Origin: Asterias rubens | Lineage: Eukaryota | Length of the DNA stretch: 64,000 nt | Direction of reading: 5' to 3' | Assembly (NCBI RefSeq): GCF_902459465.1 | Contig: NC_047068.1 | Coordinates: 6,572,001-6,636,000 of the forward strand | Notes under the pieces: model-generated | Seen by the model: the letters and a program-made list of their open reading frames with translations, nothing else | Told to the model about the DNA's origin: nothing | Database searches by the model: none | Shown: piece after piece, positions 9,645 to 38,766 of the stretch | Position numbering within the stretch: the first letter of the stretch is position 1 | How the letters are laid out: every line of letters starts with the position of its first letter | Position numbers and translations under genes: made by a program

Positions 9645-10266
9645 ATGCGTATAGTTCAAGTGTTGAGTCTTGTTCTTGGAGTTTACTGTGGCCGTCTATT
9701 AGCTGAAATCTGCCCTCCTGATTGGCACCGATACGGCGAGTCATGTTACTTCATTATAAAGGACAAGATGGATTGGTACCAAGCAAATCGCACTTGTGCC
9801 GAGTCACGAGCAAACCTAGCCATCCCAAACTCTCAATCCGAACAGGATTACATATGGGAACTATTCCTGAAAGAACCTGATCTGACAACAAATGACCATC
9901 TTTGGATTGGTTGCAATGACATATTGGAGGAGGGAAACTGGCAGTACTGTCCGTTAAACGGTGATGATACCAAAGCCTATGAGAATTGGGCGGATGAAGA
10001 GCCAAATGACTATAACGGTGGTGAAGATTGTGGTGTCCAAGACAAGAGGAGGGGGTGGTACATGGAACGATGACCACTGCGAAAACTCTCACTTTGCCGT
10101 ATGCGAGCTCCCTGTTAGCAGTGGTGGCCGCCTCACTCCTCAGTGCCTGCTACACCACGCCATGGGTGAAGGCATCGGATCATGTGGGAAGGCTTGCCGT
10201 TCACATCCCCGATGTCACTCCTTCAATCTGCCTAAACAAGCTGGAGGGAAGATGGTTTGTCCATGA
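9645..10266 (+). pseudogene. C-type lectin L1 (signal peptide + CTLD + PAN-like tail) with +1 frameshift
   Basis: ORF 9645-10073 continues in ORF 9961-10266. GAGGAGGGGGTGGTAC has one more G than paralog L5 (GAGGAGGGGTGGTAC), and the shift falls before WND. Could be a homopolymer assembly error. Confidence 0.8.
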
Positions 10267-10639
10267 AGCAGTAAGGATAAGTAGGAAACGAAGGAGACAT
10301 GAAGGAGAATATGGAGGACAACGGATTGTCATCTATTGATGAATATCGAAACTTTCAATTCTTTGTGTTTAGTGATGATTGTTTTTGTGAGGTACTCACT
10401 ATCTGTGTTTTCTAGTGGATGGTAAATTCAACGGCTATGTATGAGGTATGTTGACAATTATATCGTGTAGTCAAAGTGAAGCCGTAGTTTTATAAACGTA
10501 TGTTATAGAGGGGGCGAGGGTGGCAGGCAGTAGTCGCATGTAACGTTGGCGCAAGCTAGGTCAATACAATGTAATGGTACCAATTTGGCAACTGACACAG
10601 CCTGCAGTCGCCATTTCCGCTCGTAAAATATACCTTCTT

Positions 10640-10720
10640 GAACAAGATTGAAGGAAGATGGTTTGTCTAGAAAGCAGCAAGGGTCATAGAAAACGGCTAC
10701 AGGAGAAAATGAAGGACACA
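10640..10720 (+). pseudogene. Orphan degenerate copy of the lectin 3' end
   Basis: GAAGATGGTTTGTCTAGAAAGCAGCAAGGGTCAT resembles the lectin stop region GAAGATGGTTTGTCCATGAAGCAGCAAGGGTCAT; equivalents near 19630-19710 and 25290-25370. Confidence 0.6.
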
Positions 10721-11272
10721 ACAACTGATAATCAAAACAAAAAATTAAATTTGTAACTCTCGGTGTTTAATTAAGACATGCACTTTTTGTGAATTATTGT
10801 TCTGTCATATACTTATTAAAATTGCTGTTTTGTTTTATAAATGATTGATATATGCTGGCAACTATCAAGTAGTTGAGTTTAGCTGTTGTGCTATGCTGTA
10901 TTTGAACCTTTTCACAATTTTTAAGAAGTATAAATTGTTTGTGAAATCATAAACATATTCTGCACCTTAGTTGTAAACACTTGTCATGTAGATATGGACA
11001 TTGATTTTAGTGCGAGGTGTTAAGCTCCACACATTCATGTGAATGATTTGAAATAGAGTCATCGTTTGGTGTTCGTAAACGCAATGCTCATGTTAATGTA
11101 AAATTATCACGAAAAATAAAGTTAAAAGCCCACTGTGAAAGTTTGAATGCAATGAATACTTGTTGAGTAAACAGCAAAACCTCGTCCCAGATTTTTTATT
11201 ACAAGATCTAACCACCACGTATAGTGAGATGACAGTGGGCACCAAACGCACAGCGCGGAAAATTGATTCACC

Positions 11273-11496
11273 TTAAAGTCACCTGGAAATAGAATTTTTA
11301 TTTTGTCAAACATAAGAGTATATGTTTAGTAACAATTAAACAATTGTTTTAGTAATTGTTTGTAACGATATATATGTTAAAAAAATAGAAAAAGTTGTTT
11401 GGGGGTTGACTCCGCCTACCCCATTTGTGACGTCACATTATTATATTAGTGACAAAAGCTTTACTTTGACAAAATACCACTTCCAGGTGACTTTAA
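11273..11496. mobile_element. MITE family E (TTAA-flanked)
   Basis: TTAA|AGTCACCTGGAA ... TTCCAGGTGACT|TTAA. Confidence 0.8.
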
Positions 11497-11807
11497 GCCG
11501 AGTTTTGACATTTCTGAAATAATATTTCACTTCACAATATACTTACTATACCTTAACTGTCTAAATAGCATGGAGCCTTTGGAATAGAAATTACATAATT
11601 TGTTTATTTTAAGGTAATTAAGGGAGTTATGACACGTCATTCGATCCCATTCAACCAAAGTGAAGATTCATTCTAACCCTCACAAGAAGCACACCATTCA
11701 ATCAAGCCATGAAAAGAACAAACGTCTTCAATCAATCCGTTTGGGCAACTTGCCTGTGCCCCTACTGAATGGTTGATGCATCATATCGCTTGCTGCCAAC
11801 GATGAAC

Positions 11808-14076
11808 TCCCTCCATTACCACCCACCCACCCATCCTCCCTCCAAAACCACCCACCCACCCACCCTCCCTCCAAAACCACTCACCAACCCTCCGTGTCAA
11901 AACCACCCACAAACCCCCCCCTCCCTCCAACCCACCCTCCCTCCAAAACCACTCACCAACCCACCCTTCCTCCAAAACCACCCAACCACCCTCCCTCCCT
12001 CCAAAACCACCCACCAACCCACCCTCCAAAACCACCCGTCAACCCACCCTCCCTCCAAAACCTGCCGTCAACCCACCCTCCCTCCGAAACCACCCACCAA
12101 CCCACCCACCCTCCAAAACCAACCACCAACCCACCTTCCCCCAAAACCACCCACCAACCCACCCTACCTCCAAAACCACCCACCAACCCACCCTCCCTCC
12201 AAAACCACCCACCAACCCACCCACCCTCCAAAACCACCCGTCAACCCACCCTCCCTCAAAAACCACCCGTCAACCCACCCTCCCTCCAAAACCACCCGTC
12301 AACCTACCCTCCCTCCAAAACCACCCACCAACCCACCCTCCCTCCAAAACCACCCACCATCCCACCCTCCCCCAAAACCAACTACCAACCCACCCTCCCT
12401 CCAAAACCACCCACCAACCCACCCACCCTCCAACCCACCCTCCCCCAAAACCACCCGTCAACCCACCCTCCCTCCAAAACCAACTACCAACCCACCCTAC
12501 CTCCAAAACCACCCACCAACCCACCCTCCCTCCAAAACCACCCACCAACCCACCCACCCTCCAAAACCACCCGTCAACCCACCCTCCCTCCAAAACCACC
12601 CGTCAACCCACCCTCCCTCCAAAACCACCCGTCAACCTACCCTCCCTCCAAAACCACCCACCAACCCACCCTCCCTCCAAAACCACCCACCATCCCACCC
12701 TCCCCCAAAACCAACTACCAACCCACCCTCCCTCCAAAACCACCCACCACCCCACCCCCCCTCCAACCCACCCTCCCCCAAAACCACCCGTCAACCCACC
12801 CTCCCTCCAAAACCAACTACCAACCCACCCTCCCTCCAAAACCACCCACCAACCCACCCACCCTCCAAAACCACCCACCAACCCACCCTCCCCCAAAACC
12901 ACCCGTCAACCCACCCTCCCTTCAAAACCAACTACCAACCCACCCTCCCTCCAAAACCCACCCTCCCTCCAAAACCACCCACCAACCCACCCTCCCTCCA
13001 AAACCACCACCAACCCACCCACCCTCCAAAACCACCCACCAACCCACCCTCTCCCAAAACCACCCGTCAACCCACCCTCCCTCCAAAACCAACTACCAAC
13101 CCACCCTACCTCCAAAACCACCCACCAACCCACCCTCCCTCCAAAACCACCCACCAACCCACCCACCCTCCAAAACCACCCGTCAACCCACCCTCCCTCC
13201 AAAACCACCCGTCAACCCACCCTCCCTCCAAAACCACCCGTCAACCTACCCTCCCTCCAAAACCACCCACCAACCCACCCTCCCTCCAAAACCACCCACC
13301 ATCCCACCCTCCCCCAAAACCAACTACCAACCCACCCTCCCTCCAAAACCACCCACCAACCCACCCACCCTCCAACCCACCCTCCCCCAAAACCACCCGT
13401 CAACCCACCCTCCCTCCAAAACCAACTACCAACCCACCCTCCCTCCAAAACCACCCACCAACCCACCCACCCTCCAAAACCACCCACCAACCCACCCTCC
13501 CCCAAAACCACCCGTCAACCCACCCTCCCTTCAAAACCAACTACCAACCCACCCTCCCTCCAAAACCCACCCTCCCTCCAAAACCACCCACCAACCCACC
13601 CTCCCTCCAAAACCACCCACCAACCCACCCACCCTCCAAAACCACCCGTCAACCCACCCTCCCTCCAAAACCACCCGTCAACCCACCCTCCCTCCAAAAC
13701 CACCCGTCAACCTACCCTCCCTCCAAAACCACCCACCAACCCACCCTCCCTCCAAAACCACCCACCATCCCACCCTCCCCCAAAACCAACTACCAACCCA
13801 CCCTCCCTCCAAAACCACCCACCAACCCACCCACCCCCCAACCCACCCTCCCCCAAAACCACCCGTCAACCCACCCTCCCTCCAAAACCAACTACCAACC
13901 CACCCTCCCTCCAAAACCACCCACCAACCCACCCACCCTCCAAAACCACCCACCAACCCACCCTCCCCCAAAACCACCCGTCAACCCACCCTCCCTTCAA
14001 AACCAACTACCAACCCACCCTCCCTCCAAAACCCACCCTCCCTCCAAAACCACCCACCAACCCACCCTCCCTCCAA
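11808..14076. repeat. C/A-rich complex minisatellite, about 2.27 kb
   Basis: Built from CCACCCACCAAC / CCACCCGTCAAC / CCAACTACCAAC alternating with CCACCCTCCCTCCAAAA (about 29 bp dimer); higher-order blocks of about 610-640 bp seen as recurring ORF starts. Confidence 0.95.
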
Positions 14077-14499
14077 TTCAACTAAAAATATTTGATATTG
14101 ACTTTGATCTGTTTCCAAACCGTAAACGTGGCAAGACGATGATGAACTAAATTAAATGTTCTTCCTAACCAGAGAATTGAAGCATACAATGTTGGATATA
14201 TTCTATTGAAATGGTAATTTTCAATGGTAGTGCGTCATTGTTACCAGGGAAACAGGTTAAATAAAACCACGGAGTGTTTAGAATCTGTCTTTTTAATACA
14301 ATATATTGAACACGATACCAGCCTGTCCAACCACCGAGTGAAATCAATTTTTTAATGTTATTTTTTTATTTTGCATATCAGTCTTAGTTTTATTGGTTAT
14401 GCTAGCATTCCACATCATATTCGGTTTCAGTGAGGAAAACATACTGCGATAGCCTACCATTCTGTACTTGTACGGCTTTTGGTAATGGCCTTAAGTGTT

Positions 14500-15030: not shown

Positions 15031-17100
15031 ATCAGATCGTACTATCATTTGTAGGTCACATATGTCTTTAACACTGACTTGCTTGTGTTCTAAATTGGTT
15101 GAGGACAAACCTGACGGAGCAAAATCTCTCCAATAGACCTGTTTTTGTTCGCGACGTCACGTCCGACTTTTGCCAAGCTAGCAAGGTTTGGATTCTATGA
15201 GAAACCAAAATAGTGATATATTTGTTGGAAACAACGAAACCAGTCATGGCATGCATTTTGACCAAAAAAATATGAATATTTTGTTGCAGAAATGTTGAAT
15301 TTTATCACAATATATTAACATACGATTGAATGTTTTGCTATCACTCGGGCCGTCCATGCAAACCAGCGCGGTTAGTTTGTGAACAATAGAAGGGTTTATA
15401 ATACAGGGATTCACTATGATAAAGCGCCACCAAAAGTCATGTTTAGTTCTCTCATTCACACGAGAAGAGTTTTGCAATGATAAAGACGTGCTTATATTTT
15501 GTTAACCGAATATAATTACATCGACTCATCCATAAAAACCACCATAAAACTTAAATTAACACTAAAAAAGACCCATAATTTCTTCTGCCAATTCCAGTAT
15601 GCTACACAAACTATCACGACGATGAAATTAATTAACCGTTAAATTCAACTAAGAAGCACACCGGGTAGTAGTTATTATTGCAACTGAACACTGGCCGTGT
15701 TGCCAGGGTAACAAGTAAGCATAAACAACCTAAGGTGAAGTCAATCAATTATTGGCAAGTCTAATTTACTGCAGAACTACGCCGTACAACCGCCGGTTAA
15801 ACACGATATTTGTTTGTATAGAGTGAAGAAGCAGTTCCTACATAAGCAGTCTAGAATTTAAACCTATGCGAATTCAAAGCGAAAACACAAGAAGGTTTTA
15901 GAACTTTCTCAGAATAACCGAGTAAAACTATAAAGACAAAAACAAAAGACGACAAAAATCACCAAATGGGGGAAATACGGACCCCATAAAAAGGCATGAA
16001 TTTTACAAAATGCTGGTAACTGAACAAAATTGTTGAGGTTGAATTCCAGCCAAGATACCATATTATTACATATTACATCTTGACTGGTACTTTGCTCATT
16101 TCTGCTCAGCGGAAAACGGTTCAGCAATATTTTCCTAGTAATTGGGTCAAAGCTGGAGAACTTTAACCAAGGAATGGCATAATAATGGATTTATACAAAG
16201 TAAGCAAACGTTTTGTGCTACACCAATCACCCATAACATGGTGCATAAAACCTAGAGGCTTGAATGTATAGATACTGCAATACCTGTTTTAACAAACCAT
16301 TTTTCAATTGAATTAAATTTAATTTAATTGAATTTAATAATGGGCTTTGGTCGTTACGTTGTTAACATTCGCAAGCTAATCCCAACTGAGAATGTGCTGA
16401 ATGTGAACCCCAAGTAATGGTAGTTTTTATCTCTGGAACGAGAGTATGGCTAAGAGAGTTCAGGATTACGATTGGTGCTTTCATATGAGCAGGACCTTAA
16501 CTTTGCATTTTTAGGGGTACAAGCGATGCGTCCTGACTAACAGCAGTGGGGAAAAAATGCATAATTAAAAGGGAAGCATATTGTTGTTTTTCCATTAGTT
16601 TCACAAAACTATGATTGAATGATTTACTAACATTAGACCATCCAAATACTAACCAGCGCGGTTTGTTTATTAAAAAATGTAGGACGTTATATCAGGTGAT
16701 TCTCTAAAAAAAAATAAAGCGCGCCACCAGTAGTCTTGTTTTATTCTCTAATTCAAACAAACAGTTTTGCTAAGAAGTTGATGGGTTCGCATTTAAAAAC
16801 AAAAAAGGGATGTGATGAGTTAATAGACCATACCCTCGTCATGAAATGAGAGACAAAATGGCTGCCTGCTTTGGCTCTTCCCATAGGGATGTAGTTGCGA
16901 AGTTAAATGATAAACCTTGGAGGTAGGATTCGCATAGCTGCCATTGAGTGTTACTAATTGAATTCACGATCAAGAGTTGAAGTATATTGTGAAACCATTT
17001 TGCCAACGTTGCAAGGACAACAGCATGTGGGTTGATGTTTTTGTAAAAGGAGAGTGTTTTGGGAGTGGTTTTCGAGGGAGGGTGGTTCGGTGGTTTCTTT

Positions 17101-18930
17101 AATAGTAATAATAATAACCGAATTTATAAAGCGCCTTTTCCAAAGGATGCAAAGCGCTAGGGATAATGCAACCAAAAACCCAAAAAGAGAAAAAGACTAG
17201 AATCAAAAACACATTAGATGGAACGATTAAACAGATGTGTTTTTAAAAGTCCTTTAAACTGTTCTACAGAAGAAGCGTTCCGGATGTTTGTTGGGTGTGA
17301 GTTCCAGTTGCAGGGACCAGCGATGGAGAATGCACGGTCTCCAAACTACCTTGAGGATCGAGGTACTACTAGATTGGATTGAGATCGAAGACCTTCACAT
17401 TTGGGTTTGCTGAGATCTAGTGTGTCTGAAATGTAGGATGGGAAAGTTTTTGTAAGCGGTTGAGATCGTGTTGCTTCAGTCCAGTGAGAAGGGAGTTGCA
17501 GTAGTCGAGGCGTTAGAGTACCAGTGCACGAACAACAGAATGACAGGTGTCATAATCCAGGTATTTGCGTATCATTGTGATGTTGTGTATGTGATAGTTA
17601 ACGGATCTGCAGAGACCAGTGACATGTCGACTCATTGACATGGAGTTGTCGAAAGTTACTCCCAGGTTCCGAACGGATGAGACAGGATTGATGGTTGCGT
17701 TTCCTATGGTGAGGGTTAGTAGCTCAAGACGTTTGTAGTGATATGATGACGATGCTATGAAAAACTCTGTTTTATTTTCATTCAGCACGATTTTGTTTGC
17801 GAGCATCCAGGTTTGGACCTCCTGGATACGGTTGGATAGCCTAAACAAGCAGCCCTCGGCATCACACGGGATGGTAGGATCAAAACCTAGGTAAATTTAA
17901 ATGTCATCAGCATACATGTGGTAGTTGACTCCATGCCGATGAAGGATGTCCCCGATAGGAGTAACGTACATGGTGAATGCACGTGGACCGATAACAGAAC
18001 CTTGAGGGACACCAAACTCAAGGTGATGGACATCAGAGTTGGCACCTGCGGCATGGACCCAATGTGTTCTTCTTGTAAAGTAGGACGAGAACCACTGAAG
18101 AGCAGTACCAGTGATCCCGAAACGATCACGAAAGCGCTGTAGTAGGATATCGTGGTCAAGGGTATCAAAAGCAGCAGAGAGGTCGAGCATTACTAAGAAA
18201 ACTGCTCTGCTGCCGTCCATTATGCGGAGGATGTCGTTGTGTACCCTGAGAAGAGCTGTCTCGGTGCTGTGACCAACTCTGTATGCGACTGCAATGGATC
18301 GAGTAGCTTGTGGTCGTCCAGGTATTGAGTGAGTTGGGAGCAGACTACCGTTTCAATGACTTTCGACAGGTAGCGGATGTTGGAAACTGGGCGATAGTTC
18401 TTGAGTTCTTCTTTATCCATTGAAGGCTTTTTCAAGATTGGTGTTACTATTGCATCCCCCAGACTCTTTGGAAAGACACCTGACTGTAGGGATGCATAAA
18501 CAATCTCAGTCAGCTTGGGAAGGAATGTCATGATGTGACGCTTGAGTACTGATGTGGGAATTGGATCCAGCTGGCATGATTTGTTGGTGGATCGCTGAAC
18601 AATCTTCAAGAGTTTTTCCGAAGTAACAGGATGAAAATCCGACAACTGGCAGTCTGAAGACGGCAAGGTAACCGACAATTGCTGATCGACGTGTTGATCA
18701 GCAATAAACAAACGAATGTTCTTTACCTTCTCCATAAAGTGTTGGCTAAATTGCTTGGCCAGCGCGGTTGGTGATATTGAAACGGTAGGTTCTTGTGGGA
18801 TGCTGCCAATTAATTTTATTGACGGTACGGAAGATGACTTTAGGGATTGCGGCAGTGATGCTTCGTAAAAACGCTTGGTTCTACTCCGTGAAACTGAAGT
18901 TTTCTCTTTTGTCATTTTGGGCTTTGTGTG
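17101..18930 (-). mobile_element. 5'-truncated L2/CR1-group LINE (RT domain, frameshifted)
   Basis: ORFs with LKKPSMDKEELKNYRPVSNI, LDLSAAFDTLDH, GVPQGSVIGP, MYADD, RNLGVTFD; 3' end GGCGCTTTATAAATTCGG(TTA)n; 134 bp deletion relative to the second copy. Confidence 0.92.
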
Positions 18931-19085
18931 AGAGTGGGTGGTTTTGAGGGAGGTGGGATGGTGGGTGGTTTGGAGGGAGGTTCGGTTGATGGGTGGTTTT
19001 GGAGAGAAATTGGGATGGTAGTAGTTTGGAGGATGGGTTGGTGAGTGGTTTAGAGGAGATGGTTAGTGGGTGGTTTTAGAGCGAG
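18931..19085. repeat. Short degenerate G-rich repeat (reverse complement of the satellite motif)
   Basis: GGGTGGTTTTGAGGGAGGTGGG-type motifs; paralogs at 24591-24745, 28356-28495 and 33293-33433. Confidence 0.75.
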
Positions 19086-20142
19086 TTTAGAGTAGCCGGT
19101 AACACTTTGCACTAAAATCAACGTCAAAATATACAAGTACATTGTGCAGAAAATGTTTAATACTTTGTAATTAAATAACTGTTGATAATTGTGCTGAGAA
19201 AATGGTGCAAATACACAATCTTGAAAAAGTTTTTAGATTTGAAACACATTTCTAAGAATACTTCTGTAACGACGTTTTCCTCATGTTATTCTTAATCATG
19301 TTTAGACTCTTGCGTGAGTTTGAATCCTACAAACCATGTAAGCAGGTGTCAAAATGATTACCACATGTTTAGAAAGTCGGTACAACTTATATTGTAAACT
19401 AAGCACTGTTTTTACAGTGCATCATAACCTTAAAAACAACAGCTAAATTAAACAATTTTGTAAAGTTTTCAGGATCAAGATCTGCAATCATAATCAAATC
19501 GACCGTCACCTAAAAAACATATTTTTGTTTAGTGTCTGACGAAACAAAAAATCACTAATCCTGTTCATTAAACACCAAGAGTTAAAAAATGTGAACCTAA
19601 TCAACACGTTTTCAATCGGTTACTGTGTCTTCCATTTCCACCTTTAGCCGTTGTTTTATGGTCCTTGCTGCTTTCTAGACAAACCATCGTCCCAAAAACT
19701 TGCTAAAGCAGAGAACATTTACGAATAAATATGGCAAAAATTGCACCAGACTAGTTAACAATGAAGCATTGGGCCGTGCCTGTATTGGCGACTGCAGGCT
19801 GTGGCAGTTGAGTGTGTCAAATTGGTACCATTACATTGTATTGACCTCTTGCACCAACGTTACATACGACTACTGCCTGCCACCCTCGCCCCCTCTATAA
19901 CATACGCTTATAAAGCTACGGCTTTACTTTGACTACACGATATAATTGTCAACATACCTCATTCATCATCATTGAATTTACCATCCACTAGAAATCTCAG
20001 TTATTGAGTATCCCACAAAAAACAATCATCACTAAACACCAACAATTAAAAGTTTCTAGTTTCATCAATAGATGACAATCCGTTTCTGTACCTCCATAAT
20101 TCTCCTTCATGTCTCCACCGTTTCCTAATGACCCTTGCTGCT

Positions 20143-20769
20143 TCATGGACAAACCATCTTCCCTCCAGCTTGTTTAGGCAGATTGAAGGAGTGACATCGG
20201 GGATGTGAACGGCAAGCCTTCCCGCATGATCCGACGCCTTCACCCATGAACTCCTCCATGGCGTGGTGTAGCAGGCACTGAGGAGTGAGGCGGCCACCAC
20301 TGCTAACAGGGAGCTCGCATACGACAAAGTGAGAGTTTTCGCAGTGGTCATCGTTCCATGTACCACCCCTCCACTTGATTTGGACCCCACAATCTTCACC
20401 ATTTAAGTCGTTTGGCTCTCCATCCTTCCAATTCTCATAGGCGTTGGTTTCACCCTTCAACGGACAGTTCTGCCAGTTTCCCTCCTCCAATATGTCATTG
20501 CAACCAATCCAAAGATGGTCATCTGGTGTCAGATCAGGTTCTTTCAGGAATAGTTCCCATATGTTATCCTGTTCGGATTGAGAGTTTGGGATAGCTAGGT
20601 TTGCTCGTGACTCGGCACAAGTGCGATTTGCTTGGTACCAATCCATCTTGTCCTTTATAATGAAGTAACATGACTCGCCGTATCGGTGCCAATCAGGAGG
20701 GCAGATTTCAGCCATTAAACGGGCACAGTAAATGCCAAGAACAAGACTCAATACTTGAGCTATATGCAT
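20143..20769 (-). CDS. Secreted C-type lectin L2, 208 aa, single coding exon
   Basis: Signal peptide; CPPDW..ESCYF, WIGCND, EPN, EDC, WND, VCE; C-terminal CGKACRSHPRCHSFN PAN/apple-like tail; intact ORF. Confidence 0.92.
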   Translation of the reverse strand: MHIAQVLSLVLGIYCARLMAEICPPDWHRYGESCYFIIKDKMDWYQANRTCAESRANLAIPNSQSEQDNIWELFLKEPDLTPDDHLWIGCNDILEEGNWQNCPLKGETNAYENWKDGEPNDLNGEDCGVQIKWRGGTWNDDHCENSHFVVCELPVSSGGRLTPQCLLHHAMEEFMGEGVGSCGKACRSHPRCHSFNLPKQAGGKMVCP

Positions 20770-21000
20770 CTTGTAAATTCTTCAAAATGCTTGAAAACGA
20801 CTGCAAAAGATAAACGAGTAGAATATTTTATCTGTTTTATACAGACAGTAACAGTCGCCAGACAATGGTGAACAAAATGGTAGACAGTCTCCAGCCAAAT
20901 CCAGCTAATTCTTAAAATGTCTGAAATACTTCAAAGTACAGTATTTGAAATAATCCAGAAACTGATACAGTTTGTCAGACGTTGAGTGTTCGAGCAGCTT

Positions 21001-21033
21001 ACTGATGACGTGGATATCTTTTAGTGGTTTATA
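21001..21033 (-). promoter_or_regulatory. TATA box plus Inr-like TCAGT for L2
   Basis: TATAAA at 21033-21028, with the A of TCAGT 30 bp downstream. Confidence 0.55.
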
Positions 21034-26700: not shown

Positions 26701-27489
26701 CCGTGGTGGTGTTGTCGAAGCAAGTGCAAACTAAACATTGATTTCGCGGAGATGCGCCCCATTCCAAACCGTTAACGTTGTCAGACGCGATGACAGGACT
26801 AAGTGGCTGCTTGCTTTGGTAGTATTCCTTGCAAATGGTGATTTTCAGTGGCAGTTCGTCAGGCCTGCAGTGCGTCATCGTTTCCAGGGAAACAGGTTAA
26901 TTAAAACCACGGAGTTTTAAGAGTCCGACTTTTTCTGAGAATATATTTTCAACACGATACCAGCCTGCCCAACCGCCGAATCAAATCGATTTTATTCGAA
27001 ACTGTTATTTTCTGACCTTCAGTCGCCATATAGTATTGGTTTTGCTCGCAAGCATTCTACTCAGGTTCGATAATTTCTTTCAAAGAGGTAACAATACGCA
27101 AACAGTCAGTGCTGTATTTCTTTAATTACCTGCTTTTGGGTTAATTAGCCTGTAATATTGGTTGGTTACTGCTTATGTCTTAACACAGACTCGCTTATAT
27201 CATACAATTAGACATTCCTATTGCAACGTCACTGTCCATACGGGGTAATCGCTATAATAAAGCGCGCCACCAATAGTCATGCTTAGTCCTTTCCTTCACA
27301 ACACAACAGTTTTGCAAAGGATGGGGTGTGCTTGATTTAAAGCAACTTGTAATTTCCTTTAAATTGAAGATAAAGTACAACGACACGTCCAGAATGACTG
27401 TCATAACAACTGTGATTATTACTCATAGTCTGTCAAAATTAATCCACACTTTCTTCCTTCTAAACCGGTACGACACAAAGGTTGATCTG

Positions 27490-27640
27490 ATTGTGGAATC
27501 CAATTTCGAAGATGTATGGTATCTTTCATTGATGGTTTTCCTTGGCCTTGTTGCTTGCTGGACAAGTCTTATTCCCTCAATCTTAATCCAGCAGATTGAA
27601 GGAGCGACATCTTATTGTATGCATGACCAACACGGAGCTA
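27490..27640 (-). pseudogene. Old relic of a PAN-like lectin tail
   Basis: Minus strand reads R-C-R-S-F-N-L-L-D-*-D-*-G-N-K-T-C-P, and the DNA aligns to the lectin AGATGTCACTCCTTCAATCTG segment; duplicate at about 32428-32577. Confidence 0.55.
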
Positions 27641-29124
27641 TTTTGTAAGAAATACTTTGTATTCTAAATTATTCTCAATAATATAGCGACGAGTGATACT
27701 TCGTGCAAACACGTCTCTTTCGTACAAAGGTTTCCATGGACGTTTACGCCAAATACTTTCAAAAGTAAAGCTCTCATAACAATTAATGTTTACACATTCA
27801 AAATAAAATCGAAAAAAATCGAAACAAAGAGATTAGCACGTACAGTGCCACTCCGTGCTGGTGTACGTGCTGGATTGTTAAACCTTCGTCGTCACGAGGC
27901 GAGAGACAAAATGGCTGCCTGCTTTGGCTCTTCCACGAGGGTAGTTGCGACGTTGAAGGTTGAATCAAGTATAGCCGCCATTGATTGGTTATAATTGAAT
28001 TCACGACCAAGGATTAAATTGAAATATAATACTATGAGGCCAGTGTTGCCATGACAACAGCTTGACGTAAACCCCACAGAAAATCAGAGGTGGGTTTATG
28101 CAGTTACAAAACCCAAAGCTCAAGTCAAACCCACACAACCGTAGAGAAAATCGATATATTTTAAAACTGCTCGTTTTTTTTACTGACGTCGCAGTCGCCA
28201 TGTTGGTTATTTTTCCCAGCAAGTCTACGCATGCAATTAAGGATACCAAAATCACGTTTGTTTCACTTCGTTTCTTTGAATAAGAGAATTCGCTCCTCCG
28301 TGTTCGATGTGGTACTTGGGTCGTCTGCACGAAACTAAATGATACATTGTTTATTGGTAGGTGGGTTTGCTTTGGAGGAAGGGTTGATTTTGAAGGGATG
28401 GGGGGTTTGTGATTGGTTTTAGAGAGAAGTTGGGTTGGTGGATGGTTTTATTAGGGTGTGTGGGTTGCTGTGTGGTTTTGAAGGAGGGATTTGTTGTCAG
28501 CAAGTGCGTTAACCATCAACCATTCAGTGGGGGCACTGACAAATAGATCAAAGACGTTTTTGTTCACAGCTTGATTGGATGGTGTGCTTCTTGTGAGAAT
28601 TAGAATGAATCTTCACATTCATCTTCACATTGGTTGAAAGATGAATATGTAGAGAGAAATGGAATGAGTCTAATCTTTCAAAATCAATGACGTATCATAA
28701 CTTCCCTTATGACCTTCACACAAATTGTGTAATTTCTATCAAAGGCTTAGACTGTGAAGGTACAATAAGAATCCGGTGAAATGATTAGTTGCTCAAAACT
28801 CGCCCTGAGAATCACATGTCCGTGCTGTGCGTTTGGTACCTACTATACCATAAAGGGATGTTTTGATGTTCTAATGAAAAAAAACTATGAGGAGGTTTTT
28901 CCGGTTTTCTTAGCAATTAGTCATTGCATTCCAATCAAACTTCTACATGGGATTCACATTATCTCTCTTGATAATTTTACATTTAAATCAGCATTGTGTT
29001 TACAATACTAACCCTAATTCAAATCATTCACAATAATGTTTGGTTTTGAACTTGAATACTTTTGTACTAAAATAAACGTCCATATCTACTAGACCAGTGT
29101 GTATAACTAAGGTGTAGAATATGT

Positions 29125-29495
29125 TTAAAGGCAGTGGACACTATTGGTACAGAATTACTCAAAATATTTATAAGCTTAAAACCTTACTTGGTAACCAGTA
29201 ATGGGGAGAGGATTATATAGTATTAAACAGATTGAGAAATTGCTCCCTCTGAGGTGACGTACTTTTCGCGAAAAAGGGAATTTTCAACTAGTTTGATTTC
29301 GAGACGTTTGATTTTGAGGTTTCGAAATCAAGCACCTGAAAGCACACAACTTCGCGTGACAAGGGTGTTTTTTCATTCACAGTTATCTCGCAACTTCGAC
29401 AACCAATTGAGCTCAACTTTTCAAAGGTTTGTTATTTTATGCATAGTTGAGAAGACCGGTCTTTGACAATTACCAATAGTGTCCAGTGTCTTTAA
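29125..29495. mobile_element. MITE family A, complete
   Basis: TTAA|AGGCAGTGGACACTATTGGT ... ACCAATAGTGTCCAGTGTCT|TTAA. Confidence 0.9.
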
Positions 29496-30047
29496 TACTT
29501 CTTGATAACTGCTGGTAAACTCTAACTACTTGGTATAATTTTGAGAAAATCTTTAAGATATCAGGTGCGTTTTCGCGGCAGTAACCGATAACTGTTTTTG
29601 TCATTGACACGTAATCAACCAATGACAAATTCAACCAAAACAGTTCTGGGTTATACGACCGCGAAAACGCATCCCTGTAATCATCATTGAATCTCCATCC
29701 AAACGTAAATCGAGTTACAGAATATCCAACTGAACAACAATTTACCAATCGATCTTTTCATTAAACACAAGTAAGTATATTTTCAAGTTTCTTCAATATT
29801 CCTCAGTATAATAATATACATATCGGTTTTTGTGTCCATCACATTACTAGTTCACTGACCTATCATTTTTCGTTCTTTTTGCTCAAGAAGATTTTTTTAA
29901 AAACAAATGAATTATGCGTAAATGTCACCAGACTATTTTCCAATGAAGCATCGGGTTGTGCCTGTATTGACGAACAAGGGCTGTGGCAGTTGCTAAAGTT
30001 GTGTCAAATTGGTACCATTACGTTGTATTGACCTCTTGCGCCAACGT

Positions 30048-30483
30048 TTAAAGGATTCGGGTACTTTTTCAAAATGTCCACAGATTTACATTAAACTTAC
30101 AGGGTTTGAAGATAATGATATAGTGGAAAGCTTCCCTTCAAATATTACTAACTAAGGTTGTGTAGTTTTTGAGAAATGAGTAAAACAAGTCACAAAATAA
30201 TTTTGGTCTCATGAGACCAAAATTATTTTAGCATGTAAAATCCCCTTAACCAGTTATGATATTATACCAAACCATAGCATAACTGGTTAACACGTTTTTA
30301 CATGCTAAAACTGAGACGAAAATTATGACTTTCACTCATTTCTCAAAAACTACAGCACCTCAGTAAGTAAAATTTCAAGGGAAGATTTCTAATATCATAA
30401 TCTTCAAACTGTGTAAGTTTAATGTAAATCTGTGGACATTGTGTTTTTTGTTAGGAAAAAGTACATATACATGTAATCTTTAA
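30048..30483. mobile_element. MITE family B (TTAA-flanked) in L4 3' flank
   Basis: TTAA|AGGATT...AATCT|TTAA with internal inverted arms; empty site CCAACGTTACATGCG present in L1 and L3 flanks. Confidence 0.88.
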
Positions 30484-30743
30484 CATGCGGCTACTGCCTG
30501 CCGGCCTCGCCCCCTCTATAGTAAACGCCTACAACGCAACAACTTTATTTGTCAACATACCTCACACATCATTGTTGAATTTACCAGGCACTAAAAACAG
30601 AGTTATTGGGTATCCCTAAAAAAAAAATCATCACTAAACGCCAAGATTAAAAGTGTAAAATTTCATCAATAGATGACAATCCGTTTCTGCGTCCTGCATA
30701 TTCCCCTTAATGTCTCCTTCGTTTCCTAAAAACCCTTACTGCT

Positions 30744-31373: not shown

Positions 31374-31604
31374 CTTGTAAATTCTTCAAAATGCTTGAAA
31401 ACGACTGCAAAAGATAAACGAGTAGAATATTTGATATGTTTTATACAGACAGTAACATGCGTCGGACAATGGTGACCGATATGGTAGACAGTCTCCAGCC
31501 AAATCCAGCTTTTTCTTAAAATGTCTGAACTACTTCAAAGTACAGTATTTGAAATATTCCAGAAACTGATACAGTTTGTCAGACGTTGAGTGTTCGAGCA
31601 GCTT

Positions 31605-31637
31605 ACTGATGACGTGGATATCTTTTAGTGGTTTATA
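31605..31637 (-). promoter_or_regulatory. TATA box plus Inr-like TCAGT for L4
   Basis: TATAAA at 31637-31632; TCAGT at 30 bp spacing. Confidence 0.55.
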
Positions 31638-34052
31638 CCGTGGTGGTGTTGTCGAACCAAGTGCAAACTAAACATTGATTTCGCGGAGATGCGCCCCATT
31701 CAAAACCGTTAACGTTGTCAGACGCGATGACAGGACTAAGTGGCTGCTTGCTTTGGTAGTATTCCTTGCAAATGGTGATTTTCAGTGGCAGTTCGTCAGG
31801 CCTGCAGTGCGTCATCGTTTCCAGGGAAACAGGTTAATTAAAACCACGGAGTTTTAAGAGTCCGACTTTTTCTGAGAATATATTTTCAACACGATACCAG
31901 CCCACCCAACCGCCGAGTGAAATCGACTTTATTCGAAATTGTTATTTTCTGACTTTCAGTCGCCATATAGTATTGGTTTTGCTCGCAAGCATTCTACTCA
32001 GGTTCGATAATTTGTTTCAAAGAGGTAACAATACGCAAACAGTCAGTGCTGTATTTCTTTAATTACCTGCTTTTTGTGTTAATTAGCCTGTAATATTGGT
32101 TGGTTACTGCTTATGTCTTAACACAGACTCGCTTATATCATACAATTAGACATTCCTATTGCAACGTCACTGTCCATACGGGGTATTCGCTATAATAAAG
32201 CGCGCCACCAATAGTCATGCTTAGTTCTTTCCTTCACAACACAACAGTTTTGCAAAGGATGGGATGTGCTTGATTTAAAGCAACTTGTAATTTCCTTTAA
32301 ATTGAAGATAAAGTACAACGACACGTCCAGAATGACCGTCATAACAACTGTGATTATTACTAATAGTCTGTCAAAATTAATCCACACTTTCTTCCTTCTA
32401 AACCGGTACGACACAAAGGTTGAACTGATTGTGGAATCCAATTTCGAAGATGTATGGTAACTTTCATTGACGTATTTCCTTGGCCTTGTTGCTTGCTGGA
32501 CAAGTCATATTCCCTCAATCTTAATCCAGCAGATTGAAGGAGCGACATCTTATTGTATGCATGACCAACACGGAGCTATTTTGTAAGAAATACTTTGTAT
32601 TCTAAATTATTCTCAATAATATTGCGACGAGTGATACTTCGTGCAAACACGTCTCTTTCGTACAAAGGTTGCCATGGACGTTTAGGCCAAATACTTTCAA
32701 AAGTAAAGCTCTCATAAAAATTAATGTTTACACATTCAAAATAAAATCGAAAAAATCGAAACAAATAGATTAGCACGTACAGTGCCACTCCGTGCTGGTG
32801 TACGTGCTGGATTGTTAAACCTTCGTCGTCACGAGGCGAGAGACAAAATGGCTGCCTGCTTTGGCTCTTCCACGAGGGTAGTTGCGACGTTGAAGGTTGA
32901 ATCAAGTATAGCCGCCATTGATTGGTTCTAATTGAATTCACGACCAAAGATTAAATTGAAATATAATACTATGAGGCCAGTGTTGCCATGACAACAGCTT
33001 GACGCAAACCCCACAGAAAATCAGAGGTGGGTTTATGCAGTTACAAAACCCAAAGCTCAAGTCAAACCCACACAACCGTAGAGAAAATCGATATATTTTA
33101 AAACTGCTCGTTTTTTTTACTGACGTCGCAGTCGCCATGTTGGTTATTTTTCCCAGCAAGTCTACGCATGCAATTAAGGATACCAAAATCACGTTTGTTT
33201 CACTTCGTTTCTTTGAATAAGAGAATTCGCTCCTCCGTGTTCGATGTGGTACTTGGGTCGTCTGCACGAAACTAAATGATACATTGTTTATTGGTAGGTG
33301 GGTTTGCTTTGGAGGAAGGGTTGATTTTGAAGGGATGGGGGGTTTGTGATTGGTTTTAGAGAGAAGTTGGGTTGGTGGATGGTTTTATTAGGGTGTGTGG
33401 GTTGCTGTGTGGCTTTGAAGGAGGGATTTGTTGTCAGCAAGTGCGTTAACCATCAACCATTCAGTGGGGGCACTGACAAATAGATCAAAGACGTTTTTGT
33501 TCACAGCTTGATTGGATGGTGTGCTTCTTGTGAGAATTAGAATGAATCTTCACATTCATCTTCACATTGGTTGAAAGATGAATATGTAGAGAGAAATGGA
33601 ATGAGTCTAATCTTTCAAAATCAATGACGTATCATAACTTCCCTCATGACCTTCACACAAATTGTGTAATTTCTATCAAAGGCTTAGACTGTGAAGGTAC
33701 AATAAGTATCCGGTGAAATGATTAGTTGCTCAAAACTCGCCCTGAGAATCACATGTCCGTGCTGTGCGTTTGGTACCTACTATACCATAAAGGGATGATT
33801 TGATGTTCTAATGAAAAAAACTATGAGGAGGTTTTTCCGGTTTTCTTAGCAATTAGTCATTGCATTGCATTCAAACTTTCACAGGGGACTATCACATTAT
33901 CTCTCTTGATAATTTTGCATTTAAATCAGCATTGTGTTAACAATACTAACCCTATTTCAAATCATTCACAATAATGTTTGGTTTTGAACTTGAATACTTT
34001 TGTACTAAAATAAACGTCCATATCTACTAGACCAGTGTGTATAACTAAGGTG

Positions 34053-36866
34053 TGTGGACACTATTGGAACAGAATTACTCAAAATACTTATTAGCTTAAA
34101 ACCTTACTGTTTGATGTTGTGTCTTGATCATCGAGTGTGAAAACCATTACTTTGGTCTTTGGTACATTGATCTCCATTCCGTACTTATTGCTGGTGTCAT
34201 GCACTCTGTCAAGTAATCAATCTTGCACCGTATCCCGCATGACGTTGGCTCCACGAATTTTCTTTTTCCACTCTTGCCTATCTTGCGCTCTTCGATGTTC
34301 CAGGTAGAAGGTGCTGTTCATGATGATGTCGTTTTCCCACCTCTTCCGTGGCCTACCCCGTCTATTTTTTCCAGTTACTGTTTCAAGAAGGATGCATTTT
34401 GGATGTCTGCTGTTTTTCATTCTCACTATGTGGCCAAACCAGGAAAGTTGGATCTTGTGGATGCGTGAAGTGATCAACTCTGGTGGGTTACCACCAGCTG
34501 ACGCTCTCCTCCACACCTCTTCATTTCGCACATTGTCTTGCCAGGAGATGTTCAGGGTTTTGCGCAGGCAGCGCATTTGGAAAGCTTCTAACTTCTTTTG
34601 GTCTGCCTTCCTGATGGTCCAGGCTGCTGCGCTGTATAGAAGAACTGGATAAACCAGTGCATTCACGAGCCGCAGTTTTGTTTTTTTGTTACGTATTTGT
34701 CATGCCAAGTTCTTTGAAGTTTTCCAAGTACCACGGATGCTAGCATCAGCCTCTGTTTGATCTCACAGGAGGAGTCGTTGGATGGTGTCAGAGTCACACC
34801 AAGGTATTTGAACTGTGACACCTGCTCCAGTGCTGAACCATTGATTGTGATGTTTGATGTTGTGTCTTGATCATCGAGTGTAAAAACCATTACTTTGGTC
34901 TTTGGTACATTGATCTCCATTCCGTACTTATTGCTGGTGTCATGCACTCTGTCAAGTAAATTCTGGAGATCAGCTTCTGACTCTGCTATCAGAGCGATGT
35001 CGTCTGCAAAGAGTAGATCCCGCAGTCTGTACCCGTCTACATTAATCCCACACTGGTCACACTCAGCAAAAGCCTCTGTCAGGATATTCTCCAAGAAGAA
35101 GTTGAACAGGCCAGGAGATAACAGGCAACCCTGCCGCACCCCTATAGTAGTTAGAAACCAGTCGGTGTGTTCGTTGCTTATCCTGATGCAGCTCTTAGCC
35201 TTGTTGTACAGATCCTTAATGATGTTGATTAGTTTTCCAGGGACACCATATTGTTGCAAGACAGCGAACAAACCAAAATGCCATACACGGTCGAATGCTT
35301 TTTTGTAGTCGACAAACACAGCAAAAACCTTTCCACCTTGTTTCTCTAATCGGTGTTGGATGAGGAGTCTTAGGGCAAAAACTTGTTCCACTGTGCTGCG
35401 GCCCACTCGAAAACCTGCCTGTTCTTCGGACAGAATAGCTTCGACATATGGTTTCATGCGCCTTCTTATTATCTCTAGGAGAATTTTGCTGCCATGATTG
35501 ATAAGGCTGATGGTCCTATGGTTCTCGCAGCAACTGGTGTCTCCCTTTTTTGGTAATGTGACCATGATAGATGTTGTCCACTCATCCGGAATCCTTTCAG
35601 ATGTCCATATATTGTTGCAAATGCGATGATACGTGTCGATCATTTTATCGCCTCCCATCTTTAGTAGTTCGCCTGGTATCTCGTCTGTTCCCGGAGATTT
35701 GCCTGCTTTAAGCTTGTGAATAGCTTCCACTATTTCAGACCGGAGTATTGAAGGTTCGCTGTCAGTAGGCATTGATGGCATGTCTGCACATACTGATGGA
35801 TCTGCCCCAGTTTTATGGTTGTGTAGTGTCTGACCGTATTAATTGATAGCTCTTCGATGTTCCAGGTAGAAGGTGCTGTTCATGATGATGTCGTTTTCCC
35901 ACCTCTTCCGTGGCCTACCCCGTCTATTTTTTCCAGTTACTGTTTCAAGAAGGATGAATTGTTTAATTTCTGTTGCGTTTGATAGTAGTTCTCCCTGCTT
36001 GTTGCGAATGCACTTGGTCATCGGTTGTCTGGCAAGGCCTTTGCTTATGATCTTGATAGTGCTGAAGACTTCTTTGCTCTTGTTCTGTTGCATGTTGTTT
36101 TCTATTTGCTGACACTGGTCATTAAACCACTTCTCCTTGTCACCTTTCAGGCTCTTTTGGACTTTTCTTGTCAGCTCATTGTACAATCGCCGCCGGTCTC
36201 GATCTTTCAGAGCTTCCTTTCTTGCTTTACGCCGTTGGGCGGTCAGGTCAAGGGTTGCATCAGAAATCCAGGGTTTTCTCTTCGATTTTGAGCTACTGAG
36301 GATTGTATCTGTTGTTTCCTTTATGATGTTGTTAGTGTGTTGGATGAGTGCATCTGTATCCATTTCTCTAGTGTCGACTTCGTCTTCAAGGACACAGAAT
36401 CTGTTTTTAATTTGTAGTTGAAACCTTTGCTTTACTTCCAGATCAGCGAGTTTGTGGAGCTCCCACTTCTTCCGTTTGAGTGCCTCTGGCTCCATCTTAA
36501 ACTTGATTTTGATCTTGGCCATCAGAAGGTTATGATCAGACCCAACGAGTAATGGGGAGAGGATTATATAGTATTAAACAGATTGAGAAATGGCTCCCTC
36601 TGAGGTGACGTACTTTTCGCGAAAAAGGTAATTTTCAACTAGTTTTATTTCGAGACGTCAGAATTAGATTTTGAGATCTCGAAATCAAGCACCTGAAAGC
36701 ACACAACTTCGTGTGACAAGGGTGTTTTTTCATTCACAGTTATCTCGCAACTTCGACGACCAATTGAGCTCAACTTTGCAAAGGTTTGTTATTTTATGCA
36801 TAGTTGAGATACACCAAATGAGAAGACCGGTCTTTGACAATTACCAATATTGTCCAGTGTCTTTAA
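34053..36866. mobile_element. MITE family A split by an RTE LINE (about 34053-34107 and 36544-36866)
   Basis: Both halves match the uninterrupted paralog at 29125-29495. Confidence 0.85.
34108..36543 (-). mobile_element. 5'-truncated RTE-clade LINE with internal rearrangements
   Basis: Begins at the endonuclease GSDHNLL motif; RT motifs KSPGTDEIPGELLK, FVDYKKAFDRV, GVRQGCLLSP, LFADD; C-terminal RGRPRKRW...QDRQEW; 1-nt frameshift in an A-run near 34681-34687. Confidence 0.92.
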
Positions 36867-37464
36867 TACTTCTTGATAACTGCTGATAAAATGGTGATAA
36901 CACATCATAAAACACAGCTGGTAAACTCTAACTACTTGGTATAATTTTGAGAAAAACATCAAGATATCAGGTGCGTTTTCGCGGCAGTAACCGATAACTG
37001 TTTTTGTCATTGGCCCGTAATCAACCAATGACAAATTCAACCAAAACAGTTCTTGGTTACGACCACGAAAACGCATCCCTGTAATCATCACTGAATCTAC
37101 CATCCAAAAGTAAATCGAGTTACAGAATATCCAACAAAACAACAATTTACCAATCGATCTCTTCATTAAACACAAGTAATTATATACTATAAGTTTCTTC
37201 AATATTCTTTAGTATAATAATATACATATCGGTTTTGGTGTTCATCATTTACTCCTTCAGCCGTATGACTATTACTAGTTCATTGACCTATCATTTTCCG
37301 TTCTTTTTGCTCAAGAAGATTTTTTTTTTTAAACAAATAAATTATGCGTAAATGGCACCAGACTATTTTCAAATGAAGCATCGGGCTGTGCCTGTATTGA
37401 CGAACAAGGGCTGTGGCAGTTGCTAAAGGTGTGTCAAATTGGTACCATTACGTTGCGCCAACGT

Positions 37465-37877
37465 TTAAAGGATTCGGGTACTTTTTCAAAATGTCCACAG
37501 ATTTACATTAAACTGACAGGGTTTCAAGATAATGATAGTGGAAAGCTTCCCTTCAAATATTACTAACTAAGGTTGTGTAGTTTCTGAGAAATAAGTAAAA
37601 CAAGTCACAAAATTATTTTAGCATGTAAAATCCCCTTAACCAGTTATGATAATATTATACCAAAACCATAGCATAACTGGTTAATACGTTTTTACATGCT
37701 AAAACTGAGACGAAAATTATTACTTTTACTCATTTCTCAAAAACTACAGCACCTCAGTAAGTAAAATTTCAAGGGAAGCTTTCTAATATCATAATCTTCA
37801 AACTGTGTAAGTTTAATGTAAATCTGTGGACATTGTGTTTTTTGTTAGGAAAAAGTACATATACATGTAATCTTTAA
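37465..37877. mobile_element. MITE family B, duplicate in L5 3' flank
   Basis: Same insertion site and TTAA TSD as 30048-30483. Confidence 0.88.
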
Positions 37878-38136
37878 CATGCGGCTACTGCCTGCCGGCC
37901 TCGCCCCCTCTATAGTAAACGCCTATAACGCAACAACTTTATTTGTCAACATACCTCATACATCATTGTTGAATTTACCAGGCACTAAAAACAGAGTTAT
38001 TGGGTATCCCTAAACAAAAATCCTCACTAAACGCCAAGATTAAAAGTGTAAAATTTCATCAATAGATGACAATCCGTTTCTGCGTCCTGCATATTCCCCT
38101 TAATGTCTCCTTCGTTTCCTAACGACCGTTGCTGCT

Positions 38137-38766
38137 TCATGGACAAACCATCTTCCCTCCAGCTTGTTTAGGCAGATTGAAGGAGTGACATCGGGGGTGT
38201 GATCGGCAAGCCTTCCCGCATGATCCGACGCCTTCACCCATGAACTCCTCCATGGCGTGGTGTAGCAGGCACTGAGGAGTGAGGCGGCCACCACTGCTAA
38301 CAGGGAGCTCGCATACGACAAAGTGAGAGTTTTCGCAGTGGTCATCGTTCCATGTACCACCCCTCCTCTTGTCTTGGACACCACAATCTTCACCATCTCC
38401 TAAGTTATTTGGCTCTCCATACGCCCAATTCTCATAGGCGTAGGTTTCACCCTTCAACGGACAGTGCTGCCAGTTTCCCTCCTTCTAGATGTCATTGCAA
38501 CCAATCCAAAGATGGTTATCTGGTGTCAGATCAGGTTCCTTCAGGAATAGTTCCCATATGTAATCCTGTTCGGATTGAGAGTTTGGGGTAGCTAGGTTTG
38601 CTCGTGACTCGGCACAAGTGCGATTTGCTTGGTACCAATCCATCTTGCGCGTGATAATGAAGTAACATGACTCGCCGTATCGGTGCCAATCAGGAGGGCA
38701 GATTTCAGCCATTAAACGGCCACCGTAAACGCCAAGAACAAGACTTAACACTTGAAAAACACGCAT
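38137..38766 (-). pseudogene. C-type lectin L5 with in-frame TAG
   Basis: ORFs 38766-38485 and 38457-38137 are in the same frame, separated by TAG at 38487-38485 (WIGCNDI*KEGNW); proximal promoter absent. Confidence 0.85.

Follow-up and report, generated by a model that had tools for sequence, protein, structure and literature searches.

Tandem paralogues built on the C-type lectin-like domain (CTLD) are familiar from the vertebrate C-type lectin receptor (CLR) clusters (CD209/DC-SIGN, Ly49/NKG2) and from the snaclecs of snake venoms, which evolve by birth-and-death, gene conversion and positive selection on the ligand-side loops, and a related pattern, in which hyperconserved segments flank a hypervariable mature segment, is known from conotoxin-type families. 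Among echinoderms, the SpTransformer (Sp185/333) genes are described in two reports as tightly linked and similar genes for short secreted proteins that are mosaics of shared blocks, with segmental duplication and conversion proposed as their source (PMC5103432, PMC1988830). Here we describe an array of five related CTLD copies, L1 to L5, that spans positions 9645-38766 of a 64,000-nucleotide stretch of the starfish Asterias rubens (contig NC_047068.1, forward-strand positions 6,572,001 to 6,636,000; hereafter the window, from whose first letter all positions are counted). The array belongs to a known kind of system, the lineage-specific C-type lectin array with ordinary multigene-family evolution: a scaffold of great uniformity carries a short ligand-side segment in which variation is concentrated, patches have been exchanged between copies and a small set of codons shows a signal of positive selection.

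Motif and tblastn scans of the window found exactly these five copies, and no further lectin copy in its remainder (39-64 kb). The first-pass annotation had spoken of five intronless genes. The lack of introns is borne out for the coding sequence (CDS), which runs as one open reading frame (ORF) from ATG to stop and is annotated as a single coding exon in relatives too; the number five holds for homologous copies and not for genes, the ORFs of L2 to L4 being intact and those of L1 and L5 disrupted. Each copy encodes a hydrophobic leader, a long-form CTLD and a 57-residue tail. L2 (20143-20769, minus strand, 208 aa) and L3 (25804-26436, minus strand, 210 aa) are intact, predicted secreted lectins, and L4 (30744-31373, minus strand, 209 aa) has an intact ORF in which a Tyr codon (31307-31305), found also in independent samples, replaces the long-form Cys23. 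L1 (9645-10266, plus strand), with its CTLD and truncated PAN tail, bears a +1 frameshift within the loop segment, where the G5 run at 10051-10055 has one G too many; the ORF therefore ends at 10071-10073 (142 aa), and the copy is also without 12 bp (EEFM) of the tail near 10161. In L5 (38137-38766, minus strand), codon 94 (38487-38485) is an in-frame TAG, and the otherwise invariant N-terminal half of the CTLD (N-half) has undergone several replacements. The same layout of one plus-strand and four minus-strand copies, A1 to A5, is found in the orthologous region of Asterias amurensis (CP134962.1, 1.784-1.819 Mb), where A1, the positional orthologue of L1, is intact (XP_071797655) and A3 is unannotated and frameshifted by a 1-bp deletion.

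The proposed identity of the domain, a long-form CTLD with an EPN/WND site, is supported by profile, sequence and fold matches alike. The Pfam family Lectin_C (PF00059) is matched over protein residues 41-154 (profile positions 2-106/107) with E=2.5e-15 to 6.7e-18, at 57-66 bits against a cut-off of 22.6, and sequence matches in the PDB (E=1e-20 to 1e-15) include CTLD4 of the mannose receptor, Mincle, DC-SIGN/DC-SIGNR and mannose-binding protein (MBP). An AlphaFold model of L3, with predicted local distance difference test (pLDDT) scores of 85-96 in the CTLD core, a low-confidence long loop region and a tail below 50, is matched by Foldseek to the carbohydrate recognition domains (CRDs) of Mincle, ASGR, MGL and DC-SIGN (E=1e-11; TM score by target 0.69-0.85). 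The EPN motif, the Glu of EDC and the WND motif are kept in L1-L5 and in A1, A2, A4 and A5, the pseudogene A3 having QDC and WKD. Six CTLD cysteines, four of the core and the long-form N-terminal pair, are present in all copies except L4, and a seventh, C102, is conserved as well. EPN-type sites bind mannose-, N-acetylglucosamine (GlcNAc)- and fucose-type sugars, which are typical of microbial surfaces, and from the sequence calcium-dependent binding of the mannose/GlcNAc type is predicted for the array lectins, with specificities that may differ between copies.

The tail, in contrast to that of many asteriid CTLD-PAN relatives (echinoidin-like/perlucin-like), is not a full PAN/apple domain (PF00024): the match covers only positions 23-42 of the 76 of PAN_1 and scores 13-14 bits, below the cut-off of 21.4. 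Whereas the array ORF stops after MVCP, behind the fifth cysteine, many full-length relatives (245-256 aa) continue with QLNNA...CYFFDL to a complete PAN domain, and the tail is therefore a PAN domain cut short. An old nonsense mutation common to A. rubens and A. amurensis is suggested as the origin of the truncation. Downstream of the stop (10267-10340 in L1, and the equivalent stretch in each copy) the frame keeps a decayed remnant of the PAN C-terminus, including a Cys about 23 codons past MVC that matches the ...NCYFYDL end of the full-length relatives, and A5 has lost the stop altogether and encodes a 216-aa product (P0060). The best relatives in the databases are 'echinoidin-like' proteins of A. 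amurensis and A. rubens (77-87% identity); A. rubens XP_033630346 is encoded on the same contig as the array. The copies thus resemble the echinoidin-type lectins of echinoderms in having a signal peptide and one long-form CTLD with an EPN/WND site on a single coding exon, and they appear to belong to an asteriid-specific family of lectins whose secretion is predicted from the leader.

Differences between the copies are concentrated in one segment. The loop segment, defined as codons 101-153 (53 codons, from the long loop region through beta5), lies at 9945-10104 in L1 (plus strand) and, on the minus strand, at 20469-20317 in L2, 26136-25978 in L3, 31073-30918 in L4 and 38466-38311 in L5. Variable amino-acid columns make up 26 of its 53 codons, compared with 17 of 136 across the remaining mature protein (Fisher p=3.6e-7), which upholds the earlier observation that variation is focused on the sugar-binding loops; about 22 invariant structural codons remain within the segment. 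Averaged over all pairs of ten copies (L1-L5 and A1-A5), the proportions of synonymous (pS) and nonsynonymous (pN) differences are 0.176 and 0.162 in the loops, 0.083 and 0.034 in the N-half, 0.062 and 0.019 in the tail and 0.20 and 0.10 in the signal peptide. When silent differences from paralogues outside the array are counted at codons encoding the same amino acid, the fractions for a dispersed A. rubens paralogue (P0002) are 0.064 in the N-half, 0.31 in the loops and 0.074 in the tail, and paralogues on other A. amurensis chromosomes are patchy (D15, for example, 0.126 in the tail versus 0.286 in the N-half). The 'invariant' blocks are thus more uniform than constraint on the amino acids explains. 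The sequence pattern would be consistent with a scaffold homogenised by conversion.

The dispersed members (A. rubens LR699098.1, 11.42 Mb; A. amurensis, other chromosomes) are also single-exon, and have N-half or tail blocks near-identical to the array at silent sites (0.06-0.15) and loop segments at 0.31-0.36; since they show the same contrast between blocks, the mosaic conservation is family-wide and extends across chromosomes. A frameshifted copy on a metagenome contig of the European Nucleotide Archive (ENA) (L008:4729-5355, P0059) shares 92-95% identity with the array copies within the CDS only, the similarity running from the base before the ATG to some 10 bases short of the end of the stop codon, with wholly unrelated flanks. 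This is a dispersed or processed copy, or else a paralogue in which homogenisation has reached only the CDS, and it was rejected as independent support for the frameshift of L1, being a different, dispersed copy whose similarity ends at the ends of the CDS. Compared with conotoxin-type families, the array has the same sharp boundary between blocks invariant at silent sites and a segment in which both dN and dS are raised; unlike the conotoxins, however, its variable segment keeps the invariant codons noted above, and its diversity is largely one of old cassettes reshuffled rather than of continual new mutation.

The exchange of sequence between copies is best seen against the history of the surrounding DNA. 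Self-comparison of the window shows that the array is built of nested segmental duplications. L2 and L3 occupy tandem 5.5-kb units (15604-21100 and 21153-26767) that are 97.6% identical; L3 and L4 have the gene and its upstream sequence, about 3.5 kb, in common (upstream flanks 26437-29188 and 31374-34108, ~96% identical), and L4 and L5 the gene and its downstream sequence, about 1.9 kb (downstream flanks 29508-30743 and 36914-38136, ~92% identical, and common also to A5). Informative sites at the 5' end set L1 and L5 against L2, L3 and L4, with L3 and L4 as a subgroup, whereas those of the 3' flanks set L4 and L5 against L1 and the pair of L2 and L3. At the nucleotide level the 3' flanks diverge by 0.12-0.14 and the 5' flanks by 0.27-0.35. 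The flank pairs named in the first-pass annotation, L2 with L3 and L4 with L5, are accordingly those of the 3' side, and the 5' side does not follow them. Between the L2 and L3 units the mismatch outside the gene is 1.9%, but 31 of 159 loop bases differ (P=5e-22). For 27 of the 49 CDS columns at which L2 and L3 differ, both states exist in other copies, those of the other species included, and these differences therefore reflect transfer and not new mutation. A further 14 are private to L3 and nearly all are replacements; no donor for the L3-private patch (...NDVPCNHLYF) was found among 70 family proteins.

Within the loop segment, informative sites supporting L1+L3, L2+L5, L2+L4, L4+L5 and L1+L5 alternate within 150 bp. 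The shared patches reported before are all present in the translations (GDDTK and DYNG in L1 and L3, QDKRR in L1 and L5, QIKWR in L2 and L4, GDGEDC in L4 and L5, FVVC in L2 and L5), and the loop peptides quoted with them match for L2 to L5, that of L1 reading as quoted only when the +1 frameshift is skipped. Recombination or conversion among the array paralogues is supported statistically, by permutation of the pairwise homoplasy index (PHI; p=0.022 for the A. rubens CDS, 0.0002 for CDS and flanks, 0.0002 for the A. amurensis CDS and 0.0024 for the loops of the ten copies), by the four-gamete test, which requires at least 9 recombination events in the A. rubens CDS, and by a Sawyer-type permutation test, which detects shared loop tracts between L1 and L5 (nt 375-450), L2 and L5 (406-553) and A2 and A5 (410-453), with a global p of 0.0005 each. 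The L1-L5 tract (L1 ~10019-10094, L5 ~38395-38321) is identical over 38 consecutive polymorphic sites. On the loop segment of the five window copies alone, where power is low, PHI gives p=0.47. Individual copies are mosaics accordingly: L4 is L3-like at its 5' end, A4-like in its loop segment and L5/A5-like in its 3' flank; L2 has flanks of A2 type, yet a loop segment of the L4/A4/L5 type; and the loop segment of L3 mixes patches of A2/A5 type and L1/A1 type with its private changes. Together with the discordance of flanks and loops, these tests support the short-tract exchange that had been proposed.

The comparison with A. amurensis places this exchange in time. Interspecific flank identity is 91-95%, and flank alignments make L1 orthologous to A1, L2 and L3 both orthologous to A2, and L4 and L5 closest to A5, of which L5 is the positional orthologue. 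Since L2 and L3 are co-orthologous to a single A2, their duplication followed the split of the species. Only for L1 and A1 do the distances in the 3' flank and in the loop agree (0.079 and 0.068, respectively); the corresponding values are 0.075 and 0.168 for L2-A2, 0.023 and 0.177 for L4-A5, 0.030 and 0.184 for L5-A5, and 0.161 and 0.063 for L4-A4. The loop types of A1/L1 and of A4/L4 are common to both species and are therefore old, and loop types have shifted between array positions since the split, with fairly frequent exchange, L2, L5 and L4 having changed type relative to their positional orthologues. The loop segment of the frameshifted A3 (GAQDNGYNGQW, with WKD for WND) is nearer to the dispersed paralogue P0002 than to its array neighbours, which hints at conversion from outside the array.

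The likeness to the SpTransformer system suggested in the first-pass annotation stands as a concept, clustered echinoderm genes with mosaic variants, and segmental duplications are present in the window as well. There is no homology and no relationship of sequence or fold: Lectin_C is the only significant domain of the array proteins and all their relatives are CTLD proteins, in contrast to the Gly/His-rich disordered SpTransformer proteins. The SpTransformer genes have two exons, compared with one coding exon here, and Tandem Repeats Finder (TRF) found no GA or GAT microsatellites by the array genes, only a 27-29-bp minisatellite. Moreover, the mosaic consists here of substitution patches and one-codon indels rather than of the presence or absence of elements, and as to the very high diversity between individuals that marks the SpTransformer genes, loop pieces of L4 recur exactly in three other samples.

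Over the loop segment as a whole, the ratio of nonsynonymous to synonymous rates is close to unity (dN/dS 0.92 by NG86; omega 1.31 under GY94 M0, not different from 1, p=0.32). Site models fitted to the ten copies, on the other hand, place 17% of the loop codons at omega ~6.4, with likelihood-ratio test (LRT) statistics of 32.3 (M1a/M2a) and 34.1 (M7/M8), and the comparison of M2a with M1a gives 29.9 with only the 7 intact genes. A recombination null was built from 136 replicates of M1a data with an independent random genealogy for each block of ~8 codons; of these, 23% exceeded 5.99, the 95th percentile lay at 17.6 and the largest value was 26.5, whereas in a control without recombination 0 of 77 replicates exceeded 5.99. 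The ten-copy LRT exceeds all 136 null replicates, and the two-species signal therefore survives (empirical p < ~0.01). Given this null, the nominal p-values that the chi-square distribution assigns to the site models (1e-7 and smaller) were rejected as unreliable. In addition to the site models, a tree-free lower bound counts 61 replacement and 11 silent states in the loops versus 33 and 19 in the N-half and tail (Fisher p=0.010).

A small set of codons flanking EPN and WND thus shows a signal of positive selection in the two-species data, robustly to the recombination null. Seven sites have a posterior of at least 0.9: codon 116, three residues before EPN, and codons 123 and 124, at EPN+2 and EPN+3, all in the long loop region of the model; codons 133 and 136, where beta3 ends and in the turn between beta3 and beta4; and codons 144 and 147, in the loop after WND (the beta4-beta5 loop). 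By its EPN+2 offset, we take codon 123 to correspond to His189 of MBP-A and Val351 of DC-SIGN, known secondary sugar contacts. The diversification originally inferred is supported, then, for a subset of loop codons across both species, and is supported neither for the loops as a whole nor for the window copies alone.

Four read runs compared with the window behaved like DNA unitigs and served to show the L4 haplotype in other samples. Unitigs from three other samples match the L4 loop segment, the Tyr23 codon and both flanks with 0-2 differences; the loop pieces are identical to the window in all three, and variant bases at 31169 and 31195 lie just upstream, in the N-half, in some samples. Runs X22 and X3 contain a second haplotype of the 3' end of L4 (30443-30834) with 9 differences, one of which, at 30749, gives a Pro codon, as in all other copies, where the window has a terminal Ala codon; either the MVCA ending of L4 is polymorphic or the variant contig comes from a related copy. 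Hybrid sequences among the ENA metagenome contigs (P0066-P0070, P0004) were considered as natural recombinants and this was rejected for L006, which is 100% identical to L1 up to the invariant block and 100% identical to L4 thereafter; L006 looks like an assembler chimera, as do, apart perhaps from L007, the extra combinations.

We consider it probable that the locus is a tandem array of asteriid lectins shaped by ordinary duplication, loss, conversion and site-level selection, with a likely role in humoral glycan recognition. Under this reading, tandem duplication would add copies, as for L2 and L3 after the split from A. amurensis, and loss would remove them, as in the disrupted L1 and L5, while ectopic gene conversion or unequal crossing-over would move sequence between copies. 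Exchange together with strong purifying selection would keep the N-terminal CTLD half and the tail near-identical even at synonymous sites, and the 53-codon ligand-side segment would be kept different, as old cassettes, several of them common to A. amurensis, that move between array positions in tracts of ~15-150 bp; some 7-9 codons beside EPN and WND would carry the excess of replacements. The outcome would likely be a small set of lectins with one scaffold and differing fine glycan specificity, whose most probable role is humoral glycan (pattern) recognition, a role in defence being suggested by the type of domain, by the intact calcium and sugar ligands and by the character of the nearest solved structures. 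The array shows the same evolutionary mode as the vertebrate CLR clusters and the snaclecs, differing from them in its predicted secretion, its PAN tail and its lineage, and in a scaffold unusually uniform at synonymous sites, even in comparison with dispersed paralogues.

Several points weigh against this account. The case for adaptation rests on site models, which recombination inflates, and these were run with home-made code (GY94-based) in which branch lengths were held in proportion to those of M0; the null itself is small, with its 136 replicates made under one scheme, and the LRT for the five window copies by themselves, 13.75, falls inside that null. The loop-wide dN/dS, at 0.9-1.3, is not significantly above 1. 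Decay accounts for part of the variation, since two of the five copies are disrupted and L4 is without a structural cysteine; the frameshift of L1, being in a homopolymer, may stem from misassembly; and the low synonymous divergence of the scaffold could reflect constraint at the nucleotide level instead of conversion. In run X3 (labelled 'RNA?'), the L4 coding sequence is uncovered except for its last ~90 bases, and no published work specific to the Asterias CTLD-PAN family or to starfish C-type lectin arrays was found in the literature.

The homopolymer in L1 and the L006 hybrid of an L1 5' end with an L4 body, whose breakpoint in the invariant block shows that short-read assemblers do form chimeras here, raise the question whether the mosaic is itself an artefact, produced where paralogues or alleles were collapsed or wrongly polished in the A. 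rubens reference. This is scarcely credible: the independent A. amurensis assembly has the same arrangement of one and four copies, with a conserved scaffold and variable mosaic loops, each copy has its own distinct flanks, and the loop, 5' and 3' pieces of L4 recur in the three other samples. It is unlikely, but considerably less so, that no adaptive diversification has occurred at all and that the loops are the weakly constrained, near-neutral part of a young paralogue array, their patches being sorted ancestral variation. A loop-wide ratio near unity is what such an array would show, and the loop nucleotide divergence of 0.14-0.19 is similar to the 0.12-0.14 of the 3' flanks; throughout the family the protein sequence of the N-half and tail is conserved, two copies are pseudogene-like, and the site-model LRT is inflated by recombination. 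What speaks for selection nonetheless is that M1a fits much worse than a model with an omega ~6 class, by a difference larger than in any of the recombination-null replicates, and that the signal holds when the analysis is limited to intact genes. In addition, the ratio of replacement to silent states is threefold higher in the loops than in the remainder, the changes private to L3 are almost all replacements, and the favoured codons adjoin the calcium and sugar ligands instead of being scattered.

Recognition of gametes or the egg coat, mucus or adhesive secretion, or the sensing of food or settlement cues could equally drive the rapid evolution of the loops, rapidly evolving lectins being known in reproduction and adhesion. 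A non-immune function of this sort is rather unlikely, although the immune role is read from sequence and fold and the PAN/apple-type tail is a module for protein or carbohydrate interaction with no specificity for immunity. The arguments in favour of defence are weak ones, namely that pathogen-recognition CRDs (Mincle, DC-SIGN, mannose receptor, collectins) stand nearest among solved structures and that EPN-type sites suit the sugars of microbial surfaces. A more elaborate proposal is very improbable, that the blocks invariant at silent sites, even in comparison with paralogues 10 Mb away or on other chromosomes, might be homology arms of a cassette-exchange system in which the disrupted L1, L5 and A3 would act as donors, perhaps somatically in coelomocytes, in the manner of the pseudogene-templated conversion of chicken immunoglobulin genes or of antigenic-variation cassettes, on a lectin scaffold here. 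The loop types are old and partly common to A. amurensis, which argues for germline birth-and-death with conversion and not for a special generator of diversity.

Some repeats of the window follow the duplication units, with fragments of long interspersed nuclear elements (LINEs) and the minisatellite travelling along with them. The minisatellite, C-rich with a 27-29-bp unit, sits 1.1-1.5 kb downstream of L1, L2 and L3 (TRF) and was therefore part of the ancestral duplication unit; it is expanded to 2.3 kb downstream of L1 only (11807-14076), with short versions downstream of L2 (18934-19085) and L3 (24594-24745). A version of ~0.85 kb occupies the L1-orthologous place in A. amurensis, and in the window the repeat generates long spurious Pro/Thr-rich ORFs (11769-14150). 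Non-LTR (long terminal repeat) retrotransposon fragments lie at 17513-18915, 23013-23882, 34108-36543 and 45619-48404, two of them duplicated together with the L2 and L3 units; an RVT_1 match (E=4e-41) covers 34663-35781, and endonuclease and reverse transcriptase sequences lie at 45619-47411. In the downstream flank of L4 and L5, a repeat at 30050-30470 (with a related inverted copy at 37487-37834) exceeds neighbouring sequence ~1000-fold in word depth in each of the four read runs, and its internal deletion joints are numerous; present in very many copies, it resembles a miniature inverted-repeat transposable element. A dispersed repeat of 330-400 bp, 76-91% identical between copies (1-338, 4651-5048, 8812-9206, 29119-29519, 36544-36890 and 57950-58349), recurs beside the array units, both 440 bp upstream of L1 and where the downstream segment shared by L4 and L5 has its distal end, and is a possible substrate for unequal exchanges.

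For the study of such arrays in general, the locus carries two warnings, that site-model tests are strongly inflated by recombination, with 23% false positives in the null, and that short-read contigs make false hybrid genes across an invariant block. For the biology of sea stars, it offers a clean case in two species of a uniform lectin scaffold with a short ligand-side cassette that has been diversified and reshuffled. L2, L3 and L4, together with codons 116, 123, 124, 133, 136, 144 and 147, are candidates for asking about the glycan specificity of echinoderm humoral lectins, a question with relevance to asteroid immunity and to disease, such as the wasting syndromes.

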